A stretch of DNA of 64,000 nucleotides. Origin: Chlorokybus atmophyticus (taxonomy: Eukaryota; Plantae; Mesostigma and Chlorokybus algae). A program made the translations under genes and the position numbers. The stretch is taken from positions 181,942 to 245,941 of the forward strand of contig RHPI01003516.1 of NCBI GenBank assembly GCA_009103225.1. Direction: 5' to 3'. Under the pieces are notes generated by a model, which was not told the DNA's origin, made no database searches, and saw only the letters and a program-made list of their open reading frames with translations. Shown here piece after piece: positions 20,710 through 62,714 of this stretch; positions within the stretch are counted from its first letter, which is position 1; the number at the start of each line of letters is the position of its first letter.

Positions 20710-22230
20710 TGAAAGGGTGCAGCGTTTTCCCACACATGCTACTACTTGTTATTGCGTGTGGGTGTTGTTCTGCTGTTGTCCTTTTGCCAACAGCCACTTC
20801 TGTATGCAGTCGACAGCACGCCTACACACTACCATTGTCAACGCTGTGCTGTGTTTGCATTGCGCATGTAGCATGGCACAGCACTGTACAGATAACCTTA
20901 CTCGCTCCCATGGATGCTGCAAGTTACGTATACAACACTGCAGCTCCCCTGCAGCACGCCCACTGCACCATCCAACCAATTTTGTTTTTTGGTCACAGGC
21001 AAGCGCCGCAGGGAGAGCCGCAGTGATGTATACGTAACTTGCAGCATCCAGCATGGCGGACTCCATCAGCATTCTCGGCGCTGTGTTAGGTGCGCTCGGA
21101 TTTGCTCTTTCGCTGGTCACTATATGGATTAGCCGTCGCAACCGCAAGCTGGAGTTGATGTTTCAGTTGAACACGCAGTATACGAGAGCAATGATGCAGG
21201 CCATGTCGACCATTTCTCGCTACAGAGACAATCAGCAAAACTGGTATAATCGCTTCAAAACTGGCAGGAACAGGACAGCCCCTGCAGATGACGAAGTCCA
21301 GCAAGTTGAAGACGCCCGACGCTTGCTGGCAGGGTTTTGGGACTGGGTGGCAGATGTTCATGACAGCGGATCATTTCCTACTGGGTTCCTATCTTCACGG
21401 AGAAGCACATGGCTACAGCGTGGCAACAACGACCGCGTAGCTGTTGAACCCTTCAACATTGCTAATTGGTACGGGCGCTATTACACGAGAGAGAAACCCA
21501 AGCATTACCTCCGCAATGACCCAGCGGACAGTTGTACCCGGCCAAGACGGTATTACCTCCTGCAAGAGCTGTACAGCCAAGTGTACAATCGAGAAGGTGA
21601 CATGGTGGAGAGCTCGCTTGATAAAGCTTGGAGTGAGCTTTATGGTACCCAGCCTGCAGCAGCGGACCTTGCTAGAGCACATTGCCTCAGCAGCGTCTAT
21701 AGTCAGCCATTGAAGCTTCGCATATTGGATTACCTAACCCAACTAAGAATAGCTGTCCGGCAAAAGGTTGGTAGCCTGTGACAAGGGGGGGCTGCGGTTG
21801 CATGCGCACGATCACACATGCACATGGGGTGCCAAAAGACTTGCCATAATGTATAGTATGCAAGTGTGGAGTAAGATCTTGTCAGACAATGAGACACACG
21901 GTATCAATACTAGTTTTGCATACTTCATTGATTGCGGAGGGGATGGGACATCTGCATCTTGGGTTACCCTTTCAAGGGTGTAAACCAATCAAAGTACAAG
22001 ATGTAAGGTGTCGTTGGTACACTGACAGGCCCAACGTCTCCAGCCAGCGCCATACATGTTCAGTTAGATCGCTCTCATGCAGGTAGACTTTGGGACAAGA
22101 GGCCTCTTTACTAGACGCAGCATTGCAGGCGCCAATGTGCGGAGTGCACTGACCGCGCTGTTTTTGCAGCAGCAGCTGATCCCTCTGGTGTAAACGGCCA
22201 ATGCGGCCCCTACTGCAGCTCCTGCCAGCA
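20710..22230 (+). repeat. Repeated block Q copy 1 (TM-X gene with 5' and 3' flanks)
   Basis: Alignable by eye to 24700-25470, 46730-48200 and 58070-59560 (e.g. GGGTGCAGCGTT..CACATGC, GATGGGACATC, GGCCCAACGTC, AGAGGCCTCTTT). Confidence 0.85.
21053..21781 (+). CDS. Intronless 242-aa protein: N-terminal TM helix + domain X (unknown function)
   Basis: Clean ORF; hydrophobic ISILGAVLGALGFALSLVTIWI followed by basic SRRNRK; three decayed paralogues elsewhere in the window; alignable to the SEFIR-X C-terminus. Confidence 0.85.
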   Translation: MADSISILGAVLGALGFALSLVTIWISRRNRKLELMFQLNTQYTRAMMQAMSTISRYRDNQQNWYNRFKTGRNRTAPADDEVQQVEDARRLLAGFWDWVADVHDSGSFPTGFLSSRRSTWLQRGNNDRVAVEPFNIANWYGRYYTREKPKHYLRNDPADSCTRPRRYYLLQELYSQVYNREGDMVESSLDKAWSELYGTQPAAADLARAHCLSSVYSQPLKLRILDYLTQLRIAVRQKVGSL

Positions 22231-23579
22231 TCAACGCGCCAGTGCCGGACGCCACGAGCAAGCCGCGCAGCTAGTGAGCGCCAACCGCTTCGACAACGTG
22301 TGCAGACTGTTTCCCAAACTAGCCACAGGAGGCTTCTATGAACTGCAGAACGGACTTGCGCCTCCTGATCTTCATCACCCCCACGCTTGCATGGTACTGT
22401 GCATGCTTACCGTATTCGTGTGGGATCGCGTTCTGCCTAATCTCGCGGGTAAGAGGGGCCTTGTTGCCTAGTAGGCGATAGCTGTCAAGGCAGACACCAT
22501 CGGGCATTAATGCGCGGCTAGGTAGTTGTACTTGGGGTGTCCCAATAAGACGAAAACTTCAAGGCGACTTCGTTGCAGCGCTCATTATACTGCCACGCCG
22601 TGGATGCAGGCAGCAAAAGGCTTGCCCAGGCCCCCCTTCTTACATGTGTGCGCGCGCACGCATGCGTCGATATGTGCGTGTGTATATTCGTGCACACGTT
22701 CACGAAGCATATTTGTATGTAAGCCTACGTGTGCAAACGTGCCACACAAGCATGTGTTGAATGTGCTGGTTGAAACAACGCCACACACAAAACACATGCG
22801 CGCACACACGCATAGACGTCAATGCAGCGTGGTTCATGTATGAGCAACTCCTAATGTAAATGGGCAATACAGCGACTGCAACAGCCATACATTGTAATGT
22901 TGTGTACTGCAGTCTATACACACTACGAGCATACCATCTTTTGTACATATGTAGATGGGTGCGTGCCGCGCTATGCTGCTCTACATTACACGGCTACGCG
23001 CACACACCGCACGCATAGCACACACACCACGCCCAGCGTTACACACGTCACGCCGCTGCGTTACCCACGCCCACCATGCTGCTGCACCGCCCAGCGTCAA
23101 GCCAGTCAGTCGACCCTGCAACCCACCTGCAATAGTATTGATAACACGTTGCAATCACAAGCTAGTGTTTAAGAATGTTGGGATGGTAACTGCTTCTGTT
23201 GAGCTATTGACGCATTCACATGAGGCATGTGTGCACATCTGTATCAGAACAGTTGTCTGCAAGCCAACTGTTGGTGGTTGCGAGACGGGTCGAGACAAGT
23301 ACTATTCGCACGGGAAGCATATGCAAATTTGCAGGTCATACGATGGCAACAACAACAAAATCTAATACATGTACATGACCTGGTATGCTGGCTGTAGTAA
23401 AGTCAAGACACGGCGTTACAAGCATGGCGACAACAACGCCAAACAAACTACTGATACTCAGCCAGCCGTCCATGCACCTCAACATTCTTGTCACCAACAC
23501 TGCCACAATGTACCTGGCCTGCCACAACCCCGCGGTCGTCGCTCAACGCCCACGCGCACGCCCACTCGCTCGCGTCAGT

Positions 23580-60160: not shown

Positions 60161-60523
60161 GATGCTGCGACTGCCGTCATAGTCAGAGCACCAAACCTTG
60201 CCACCGGTGTAGCCCGCACTTCAGGTGTGTCAAACAGCCGCGCTCGTTACAGCAATGAACGCATCACAGCCAGTACGCAAGCAGAACGCGCTTGACACCA
60301 TGTCCATCGCCTGCAGTGTCAGCAACATGTGCGCAGGTCAGTGATTGAGAGTGGCTGTGCGGTGAGTGTGAATCGTGAGACATTGGATGTGCATGCATGT
60401 GAGTGTAGCAGTCAGCATGCGCACGTAGTTCAGTAGGTTGCTGTACGAGTGGCTGCGTGCATGAGCTGTGTGTGGCCGCTCTTACCCTGGTGTTGTTAGG
60501 GGCCAACCATACCCGGCAGCGCC

Positions 60524-62714
60524 TCACCCGCCTATGTCCTTTGTGTCAATGCAGACCGAAGCAGGTGTTGATGTTGGATACTCCACACTCTGCTGTATTT
60601 GCATCCATCCAGCTCTTGCAGCACTGCGAATGCCTCCCTCTGACCTCCCCGCCCCCAAAGCAAGCTTGCTTAGTTCCTCCTCTTCCGCCGCCTCCCCCTG
60701 GTGCTGCTGCAGCACAGCAACAACAGCAGGATTCAACCTACTGACAGCTTCCGGCAGCGCCGTGAAGTGGAAGCACTTCTCAAGGTACAGCTTTTGCAGA
60801 GCAGTGAGCCTGCCAAAGGATTCCGGCAGCGCCGCCAAGCTGCGGCACCAGCTCAGGTCCAGTGTCTGCAATTGAGCCAACTCACCGAAGGACTCTGGCA
60901 GCTCTGTCAAGCTGCTGCACCCGCACAGGTACATCTTTCGCAGAGCAGCGAGCTTGCCAAAGGACTCCGGCAGCGCCACCAAGCTGGCGTTCCAGCTCAG
61001 GTCCAGCGTTTGCAGGGCAGCAAGCTTGCTGATGGACTTCGGCAGCTTCGCCAAGCGGCGGCACGCACTCAGGTTCAGCGTTTGCAGAGCAGTGAGATCT
61101 CCAGATTCAGGGAGCTTGCGCAAACCCATGTTAGTGAGAACTAGAGTCTGCAGCATTGCGAGCCTGCCAAGCGCTTCAGGCACCTTCTTTAAACAAGTAC
61201 AGCCCCGCAGCACCAGGATTTGCAGCGCCTTGACGTTTCCAATGGACTCGGTCAGCAGCATTGAGGCATTGTGCACGACTTCTTCTACGAGGAGGACGAG
61301 CAGTTTCGTGCATGCAGCAACATTGCGCAGTGAAGTGCTCAAGGTCTCGCAGCGCCAGCTTTTCCATTCCAAATAGACCAGCTCTTTGGGACCCCCCTCG
61401 AGGAAAATACCATCCCAATCAACCATGCCAAGATTTAGCATGCGGAGACAAGGCATGTGGGCCATGGCAGGTAAATATTCATTGACATTAGCCAAACACA
61501 TAGTCTCAACCTTCTGATAGGCCTGCATGCAAACGAAGCAAACAAAACCCGCAAGTAAGTCCATACGACATTGGATGAAGGCACTGATACGGGACATGAA
61601 CTACCGGTACCTCCTGAGGTATGTCTCCTACTGCCTTTGGCACCCAGATATGCATGGACGGGCTACTAGTAGTATCGGCAAGCATTCGCCCCATGTCGCG
61701 GAGTTGGTAGTGTACCGAGAACACTACAACGTCCGAACGAGATCTTGTTACAAGGCAAACGAGGGACAACTCCACCAGGCCATCCAATGCATCTGACGCG
61801 TTGCCCCACGCTGGAAGCAGCATGTCCTTGCTCTTCCCCAATGCAAAGCAGCATATGTCCAAAAACATTTGCTGTTCCTTTGGTGACAGATTGTCGTAGC
61901 TGAGCCTAAGCTTGGCCCAAAGCATATGGTCAGCTGTACCTGCCATCCAAACTGCCTTTTGCAAGCGCTGCGGTGCCTGGTTCCAAGCCAGCTCATCATC
62001 TACTTTGCGCGTGTGAAGATAAGAGCCAACGACCTCCAGCGTGAGCGGCAGGCCCTGGCACGCCTTGATGACCTCTTCAACAATGATCCCCAGATTTGGA
62101 GGCACTACTTGTGATCTGAAGGCATGTTGGCAGAACAATCGTCTAGCGTATAGATTGTCGAGCAGCGGCACTTCCTCCAACAACCTAACCTTCTCGTGCC
62201 CCTTTAGTAAGTTGCGGTTACGAGAGGTCACCAGCACACAACTGCCCGTACCAAGCAGAGGCGTGGCGTCCTCCAGATTGAAAGGACCAATCAGGGCTTC
62301 TTCTTGATCGTTGCTCCAGATGTCATCAACAACGAGCAGCACCTTCTGCCCTTGCAAGCGCAACTTAAGGAATGCTTTTCCTGCGGAAATGGAGTTGAAT
62401 GCATATCCAGACATAGGAGCACTCCCAAGCTGTGTGAGCATCTGCTGTTGCAGCTGTACCAGCCTCCCATTGTTGCGACATGGTTCATTCCCGACCTCTA
62501 CAAAGCAGCAGCTGCCAGCAAACTTGCTGTGCAGTTTATTGTAGATTGCCATTGCGAGGGTAGTCTTCCCAATGCCACCCATGCCCCAAAGACCCAGCAT
62601 GACGACCTTGGTGCCATTGGTAGCAGCACTTAACTTCTTGAGGACATCTTCAATGCGACGCTCAATGTCCACTGGGTATTTGGCAATGTCAAAAACAGGG
62701 GGGTCCAACATCTT
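60524..62714 (-). CDS. NB-ARC-LRR part of a TNL paralogue, cut off from its TIR by a Gypsy insertion
   Basis: GLWGMGGIGKTTLA, VLLVVDDIW, CQGLPLTL, MHD motif as VHY; intron ~61616-61528; LRR exon; strong similarity to 27341-28651; begins at the LTR junction. Confidence 0.9.

Follow-up and report, generated by a model that had tools for sequence, protein, structure and literature searches.

In the 64,000-nucleotide stretch of Chlorokybus atmophyticus DNA analysed here (hereafter the window), a repeated segment named block Q lies beside genes of the NLR type and encodes, in one of its copies, a small protein provisionally called TM-X. A first-pass annotation of the window had proposed that TM-X is a linked executor of TIR-NLR signalling. 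We are close to certain that TM-X consists of an N-terminal membrane helix and an EP domain of the EDS1 family, that it is lipase-less and that its gene is transcribed, and we therefore call it TM-EP.

Block Q and the NLR genes of the window

Copies of block Q were delimited by comparing the window with itself by blastn and by local alignment scored against shuffled sequences, while the NLR census relied on Pfam scans and on tblastn searches in which TIR and NB-ARC sequences of the window served as queries. We found four copies of block Q, all on the + strand, and exactly three NLR-type genes, all on the - strand:

20715-22172, + strand: Q1, the intact TM-EP gene, coding sequence (CDS) 21053-21781, 242 aa
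~24740-25351, + strand: Q2, a truncated remnant (blastn, local alignment, RNA contigs)
46738-48108, + strand: Q3, a pseudogene, CDS homologue 47011-47741 (blastn, pairwise alignment)
57840-59467, + strand: Q4, a pseudogene, CDS homologue 58374-59064 (blastn, pairwise alignment)
25472-29333, - strand: TNL1, TIR-NB-ARC-LRR; TIR 28887-29333, NB-ARC 27341-28651, LRR 25472-27265 (Pfam)
48709-52574, - strand: NLR2, TIR-NB-ARC-TPR; TIR 52125-52574 (Pfam, tblastn)
60524-62723, - strand: NLR3, NB-ARC-LRR, a paralogue of TNL1 (Pfam, tblastn, blastn)

The geometry described by the first-pass annotation was recovered by blastn, Pfam and tblastn: three of the four copies are convergent with NLR 3' ends, Q2, Q3 and Q4 each facing one NLR at 0.1-1.5 kb from its stop codon. 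Q1 lies 3.7 kb from TNL1, with Q2 between them. We also agree that only the copy at 21053 is intact, since Q1 alone has an open frame and the other three are broken. In pairwise alignment, the CDS homologue of Q3 (72-75% identical to Q1) carries 3 in-frame stops and 10 indels, and that of Q4 (65-69% identical to Q1) 6 stops and 16 indels; a homologue of the upstream exon is found for Q3 at 46240-46442. Q2 retains the upstream part of the block, which aligns to the other copies with scores of 70-99 (shuffles: 19 ± 3), a degenerate start without ATG, and the final ~140 nt of the CDS, positions 25128-25351 matching the 3' end of Q1.

Both window TIRs, those of TNL1 and NLR2, keep the catalytic Glu in alignments to PDB sequences. 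The NB-ARC of NLR2 is split between 51585-52016 and the beginning of the open reading frame (ORF) at 48709-51408, the remainder of which is occupied by TPRs. The NB-ARC DNA of NLR3 is 81% identical to that of TNL1, and NLR3 lacks a TIR because its 5' side has been replaced by a retroelement fragment (62716-64000). TNL1 and NLR2 are far less alike: their TIR domains are 33% identical and their NB-ARC parts gave no match by tblastn.

Each NLR-adjacent copy forms a unit with its receptor (A, Q2 and TNL1; B, Q3 and NLR2; C, Q4 and NLR3), and the units share sequence beyond block Q. The flank upstream of Q2 (23720-24494, + strand) is homologous to that upstream of Q3 (45513-46442), and the flank upstream of TNL1 (29976-30921) is 74-77% identical to that upstream of NLR2 (53609-54624). 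Between units B and C, 46499-47663 matches 57840-58998. These shared flanks, together with the paralogy of TNL1 and NLR3, indicate that the presence of a block beside every NLR is a product of segmental duplication. The claim that every NLR has one is correct for all three, but the three cases are not independent evidence, and the shared flanks and pseudogenes bear out, for the pattern within the window, the alternative that the first-pass annotation had itself offered: passive co-duplication. That the NLR-adjacent copies were not kept is compatible with passive co-duplication and equally with a hub arrangement, where a small number of intact EP genes would work for a large set of receptors. 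Units A and B have homologous flanks on both sides, yet the NLRs that they enclose are unrelated, which suggests either receptor replacement inside a conserved frame or repeated elements.

Other features of the window are the following:

43651-44695, - strand: remnant of a further unit, with a spacer (43651-43871) homologous to 59631-59838 and an LRR fragment (44463-44695)
14946-16554, + strand: gypsy-type integrase region, integrase 14946-15548 (Pfam/blastn)
62716-64000, - strand: inverted integrase copy, 82% identical to 15252-16554, cutting the 5' end of NLR3
3167-4213: gag gene, in the left third of the window
9649-10443: DUF4218 transposase-associated ORF, in the left third of the window
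32517-33073, 37142-37152, 39930-40301 and 54699-55557: assembly gaps

No copy of block Q was detected in the remnant at 43651-44695 by self-comparison of the window. None of the four assembly gaps overlaps a Q copy or an NLR ORF, and nothing stated here on the copies and the NLR genes requires unbroken sequence across one. The spacing of the units is uncertain because of the gaps, and genes missing from the assembly could lie within them. Near-identical short-period simple repeats (37660-37738, 40302-40409 and 55558-55639) form the edges of three of these gaps and are probably their cause.

The TM-EP protein and its transcripts

The intact ORF matches Pfam PF18117 (EDS1_EP) over residues 58-178 with 42 bits, against a gathering cut-off of 23.1 (E 1.1e-10). 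In a phmmer search of PDB sequences the best match was OsEDS1 of rice (E 5e-6), followed by PAD4 and SAG101, and the alignment with rice EDS1 pairs the blocks LAGFWD, W-L/I, VEPxDIANYY and RPRRY. When a profile was made purely from algal proteins (28 sequences, none from seed plants), it retrieved only EDS1, PAD4 and SAG101 chains from the PDB sequences (E 5e-27 to 7e-18), the next match having an E value of 0.35.

Structure prediction points the same way. The AF2 model of TM-EP has a pLDDT of 85.8, and the top 24 Foldseek matches to it are all EDS1-family chains. VIA-align superposes the model on the EP domains of EDS1, PAD4 and SAG101 with Z 14.5-17.7 over 153-184 residues, placing model residues 24-210 on EDS1 360-581 and PAD4 292-494, while the next unrelated fold reaches Z 5.6. 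The extent of these alignments shows that the predicted domain (approximately residues 26-210) represents most of an EP domain, beyond a short motif.

The 25 residues ahead of the EP part form a single hydrophobic helix: the Kyte-Doolittle 19-residue mean is 2.16 at approximately residues 5-25, followed by RRNRK, and the next best stretch reaches 0.41. This layout predicts an N-terminal, single-pass anchor with a cytosolic EP domain, and hydrophobic N-terminal segments are common among the relatives of the protein. A Pfam scan of the intact ORF gave no Lipase_3 match (block Q was not scanned on its own). Given that the defining lipase-like domain is absent, TM-EP is a homologue of the EP module of the EDS1 family and not a strict member of that family.

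In EDS1, pRib-ADP is contacted by Asp469, Asn472, Tyr473, Thr482 and Arg493, with Lys478 implicated by mutation (preprint 10.1101/2022.04.01.486681). By the spacing of the rice EDS1 alignment, Asp469, Asn472 and Tyr473 belong to the DIANY motif, whereas Arg493 belongs to RPxRY; the equivalents in the window protein are N135, N138, W139 and R166, and the first of these positions is Asp in its paralogues. These four columns rank among the best conserved of the algal family. At the positions of PAD4 R314, K379/380, Y383 and F387, the window protein reads M51, Q122 and N126, with R116 and R117 nearby. Judged from aligned residues, conservation of the pocket between TM-EP and EDS1 appears partial.

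Expression was assessed from the contigs of one public run containing the stretch, which we take to be RNA because they carry canonical introns on both strands. RNA contigs span ~21040-21782 over the Q1 CDS, and one of them, 382 nt long, matches 21401-21782 exactly. Q2 is transcribed and spliced as well: its first exon lies in the flank at 23720-24494 and ends at 24430, the intron covers 24431-24989 (GT..AG), and the second exon starts at 24990. This acceptor has a homologue at 20998/20999 in Q1, so that the left part of block Q corresponds to the end of an intron in the 5' untranslated region (UTR). The true start of the protein is likely the conserved MADSIS..., to which the non-conserved N-terminal extensions of Chlat1 models also point. 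A splice site at 21042/21047, considered on account of loose RNA contig ends, was rejected, these ends looking like the 5' UTRs of paralogues instead. Finally, a spliced transcript of the - strand (22815-24362; exons 22815-23124, 23512-23624 and 24213-24362, with CT..AC junctions) lies downstream of TNL1 and is antisense to the Q2 transcript, whose 5' exon it overlaps; no long open frame was found in it.

Relatives of TM-EP and their neighbourhoods

The idea that TM-X has been kept as one functional copy does not survive a look at the rest of the genome, for Chlorokybus has at least five other paralogues that are intact. With 61-72% identity to the window protein, the Chlat1 paralogues P0001-P0003 share its TM + EP layout; the lipase-less EP proteins among the Chlat1 models are 1522, 3546, 3547, 1191 and 627. 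The copy in the window is itself absent from the annotated proteins. Several Chlorokybus gene models fuse the EP domain to other parts: TM-EP-TIR (P0011), SEFIR-EP (P0008) and LRR-SEFIR-EP (P0023), the LRR of the last being 51-57% identical to the LRRs of TNL1 and NLR3.

A gene of the SEFIR-EP type is the neighbour of TM-EP in the window:

18902-20301, - strand: SEFIR-EP gene, head-to-head with Q1, paralogue of Chlat1 P0008 and P0010

This gene has probably decayed: it shows a 7-nt insertion and frameshift near 19030, a 2-residue deletion in EPxDIANYY and an internal deletion in SEFIR. An additional C-terminal EP fragment lies beside it at 18440-18607. Judging by model numbers, the same pair of neighbours recurs in Chlat1 models 627 (TM-EP) and 626 (SEFIR-EP). 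Elsewhere in the window, 31497-31610 (+ strand) is a 79% copy of the N-terminal hydrophobic exon of P0008. It lies shortly ahead of the gap at 32517, at 2 kb upstream of TNL1, and no further part of a P0008-like gene was found.

Outside Chlorokybus, relatives are scarce. Only 31 proteins were retrieved at E <= 1e-3 among 1.84 billion representative proteins. Some are Chlorokybus paralogues, others are short proteins of other algae or of metagenomes, and the rest are true lipase + EP proteins from gymnosperms and Arabis. Automatic annotation in UniProt gives two proteins, from the trebouxiophytes Elliptochloris bilobata and [Myrmecia] bisecta, the name 'EDS1 EP domain-containing protein'. At four of the loci encoding lipase-less EP proteins, TIR or TIR-NB-ARC genes lie close by. 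For instance, in a metagenome alga (L007) a TM-EP gene sits between two TIR-NB-ARC-LRR-Sel1 genes, one head-to-head and one tail-to-tail ~0.9 kb off, and a third TIR-NB-ARC gene is found further along. A TIR-NB-ARC gene is head-to-head with a TM-EP-like gene in L008, TIR-NB-ARC genes flank the EP gene on both sides in L005 ([Myrmecia] bisecta), and in L002 a TIR gene lies 4 kb upstream of the EP gene. L003/L004 (P0021) was first taken as a lipase-less locus and was dropped from the count, being a lipase + EP gene of the seed-plant type.

Three contigs or groups of contigs deserve separate mention. In L008 (ENA ERZ25039592 contig_5236, 1-14931) the GC content rises from ~55% to ~71% after 8 kb, and TetR, ArsR and SDR genes occupy the high-GC part; the contig is possibly chimeric, and we do not claim a bacterial EP protein from it. 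When the lipase domains of gymnosperm EDS1 were run by tblastn against the fetched loci of relatives, class-3 lipase pieces were seen to precede an algal-type EP on the same strand in L006:6804-10400 (Elliptochloris bilobata, GCA_040144335.1) and in L021:5907-9527 (JAABUK010012312.1; also L032 and L013). The pieces include the GHSLGG elbow and are colinear with Ginkgo EDS1, although L006 has two annotated genes there, and these loci may be cases of a lipase + EP gene built like EDS1 in organisms other than seed plants. In P0018 ([Myrmecia] bisecta, L005:10001-12261), the N-terminal ~115 residues are weakly similar to MLKL_N (Pfam E 8e-4) and their Atlas features lean toward the MLKL_N, RPW8 and MCAfunc clusters (0.87). 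No homologues of this part were found for an alignment, and a single-sequence AF2 model (pLDDT 65.7) resembled generic helix bundles only, so that an MLKL/RPW8-like four-helix bundle, standing where other proteins have the TM helix, is a lead that may or may not hold.

Function of TM-EP and comparison with known systems

In our best reading, which we hold at even odds, TM-EP would act in the TIR-NLR pathway of the alga as an EP-type receptor that is bound to the membrane, recognises nucleotides made by TIRs and has its output at the membrane. In such a pathway, the neighbouring TIR-NLRs would make the nucleotide signal. Their product would dock on the surface that the conserved DIAN(Y/W) and RPxRY motifs form on EP domains, the latter acting either as homo-oligomers or in a pair with a second EP protein, for example one of the adjacent SEFIR-EP type, and the signal would then be relayed at the membrane. 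A single intact TM-EP gene, or a small number of them, would suffice for many NLRs, like EDS1 in seed plants, which would explain the decay of the co-duplicated copies beside the NLRs. A bolder version, doubtful in our judgement, is that the EDS1 receptor descends from a protein of the TM-EP form, sensor and executor in one: ADP-ribose-type nucleotides made by TIRs would bind the cytosolic EP domain and oligomerise the anchored protein, which would permeabilise the membrane or signal there. This would work without a lipase-like domain or a helper NLR, and seed-plant EDS1 would be a later fusion of the EP module with a class-3 lipase fold. Among trebouxiophyte algae, L006 and L021 already have a possible order of lipase followed by EP.

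Several observations weigh against a receptor role. In the window, all three NLR-adjacent copies of block Q are pseudogenes, no Q and NLR pair having stayed intact after duplication, and segmental duplication reduces the window to about one independent Q/NLR association. The Pfam PF18117 match covers only profile positions 11-113 of 211, and the input alignment of the AF2 model included two gymnosperm EDS1 sequences. At the putative pocket, the first contact residue of the window protein is Asn, not Asp; in the sequence alignment EDS1 Lys478 and Thr482 have no clear equivalents and the PAD4-side contacts Arg314, Tyr383 and Phe387 are not conserved, and the residues that are conserved could be structural instead. 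Fused gene models could be annotation mergers. Ligand binding, oligomerisation and the nature of the output are all things that we infer for TM-EP. Linkage outside Chlorokybus, by contrast, speaks for the role: TIR and/or NB-ARC genes lie within 10 kb of 4 of the 6 lipase-less EP loci there and of 0 of 5 seed-plant EDS1-family loci (Fisher p 0.045), a comparison of few distinct loci with a rough control; L001 and L053, the remaining two of the six, have no TIR or NB-ARC gene within reach. The proposed link of TM-X to TIR signalling thus stands as far as the EP domain, the algal TIR/NB-ARC neighbours and the fusions are concerned, with linkage elsewhere extending to four loci in six, but it draws no support from the dead NLR-adjacent copies of the window.

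One can easily suspect that a real EP gene with a function unrelated to NLRs was simply carried along with them and that its copies decayed. The flanks shared by units A, B and C, the paralogy of TNL1 and NLR3, the pseudogene state of every NLR-adjacent copy and the two loci without such neighbours would all be expected under passive co-duplication alone. Yet we regard this as unlikely, as similar neighbourhoods occur in the unrelated algal contigs L002, L005, L007 and L008, several Chlorokybus gene models join an EP domain to a TIR, SEFIR or LRR part, and the only known function of EP domains is to read TIR products. A regulator or adaptor role, in which the anchored EP domain would tether or restrain a partner (SEFIR-EP or an NLR) or would act as a sponge for TIR products and set a threshold, is rather unlikely. 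Seed-plant EP domains do interface with partner EP domains and helper NLRs too, TM-EP adjoins SEFIR-EP both in the window and in Chlat1 models 626/627, and the lack of conservation at the PAD4-side contacts would suit this role; but in the algal family conservation is highest at the columns that match EDS1 ligand contacts, and the partner complex is hypothetical. A complex prediction with two copies of residues 26-242 scored 0.00, a value that counts neither way on dimerisation, the fold being uncertain without an alignment.

Lastly, block Q could belong to a transposable element or result from misassembly, its ORF not being a host gene. The window is rich in transposons (gag, integrase and DUF4218), and a short palindrome lies at 20911-21050. 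Pfam and blastn revealed neither a transposon protein domain nor terminal repeats in block Q, which consists of the intron end, 5' UTR, CDS and 3' UTR of a spliced, transcribed gene, is touched by no gap, and has intact paralogues (61-72%) and distant relatives in Chlorokybus and other algae. This explanation is largely refuted, and we give it very little credence.

EP proteins have been described as specific to seed plants (Lapin 2019; Johanndrees 2022; Ngou 2024). Those screens demanded lipase + EP or long matches, and for green algae nothing beyond 'short EP-like sequences' is mentioned in the literature accessible to our search, where we found no paper on a membrane anchor, a near-complete EP fold, or TIR/NLR linkage and fusion of algal EP proteins. 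Since TM-X is itself an EP protein, the premise that algae need another route for TIR outputs because EP-type receptors are confined to seed plants is not supported. In N. benthamiana, only one Ginkgo and two Physcomitrium TIR fusions were EDS1-independent, and among the EDS1-dependent TIR fusions mutation of the catalytic Glu abolished cell death (Kennedy et al. 2026). As the exceptions named there do not include the Chlorokybus TIR fusion, a need of this fusion for EDS1 and for the Glu is implied, not stated, although the alga is said to 'lack EDS1'.

TM-EP is thus a concrete candidate receptor for TIR signals outside seed plants, located in a TIR-NLR cluster and with relatives linked or fused to TIR, SEFIR and NLR parts in several green algae. 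It touches on the question of how TIR-NLRs signal in algae, mosses and ferns, which ordinary binding and co-expression assays now make testable, and offers a starting point for the question of where EDS1 came from.

Similar arrangements are known in other systems. In flowering-plant NLR pairs and clusters (RRS1/RPS4-type, NRC), a receptor and a signalling component lie side by side and co-duplicate; here the partner is not an NLR, the genes are convergent and not head-to-head, and the NLR-adjacent copies are dead. In bacterial systems (Thoeris ThsA variants with transmembrane helices; TM effectors of CBASS and Pycsar), the nucleotide signal of a TIR or cyclase is read by a separate protein, encoded by an adjacent gene, in which a sensing domain is joined to membrane helices and which acts at the membrane. 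The likeness is one of analogy only: EP has no relationship to the domains that do the sensing there (SLOG, Macro, SAVED and others), and an action of TM-EP at the membrane is hypothetical. With EDS1, PAD4 and SAG101, TM-EP shares an EP domain that is homologous to theirs and carries the core motifs FWD, WL, VEPxDIANYY, GHYL and RPxRY, a helical EP fold as predicted by modelling, and the context of TIR-NLR immunity. Its EP domain is shorter, without approximately the last 40 residues, and the protein has no class-3 lipase-like domain, hence no LLIF dimer helix; in its place, and in a streptophyte alga instead of a seed plant, stands an N-terminal membrane helix.

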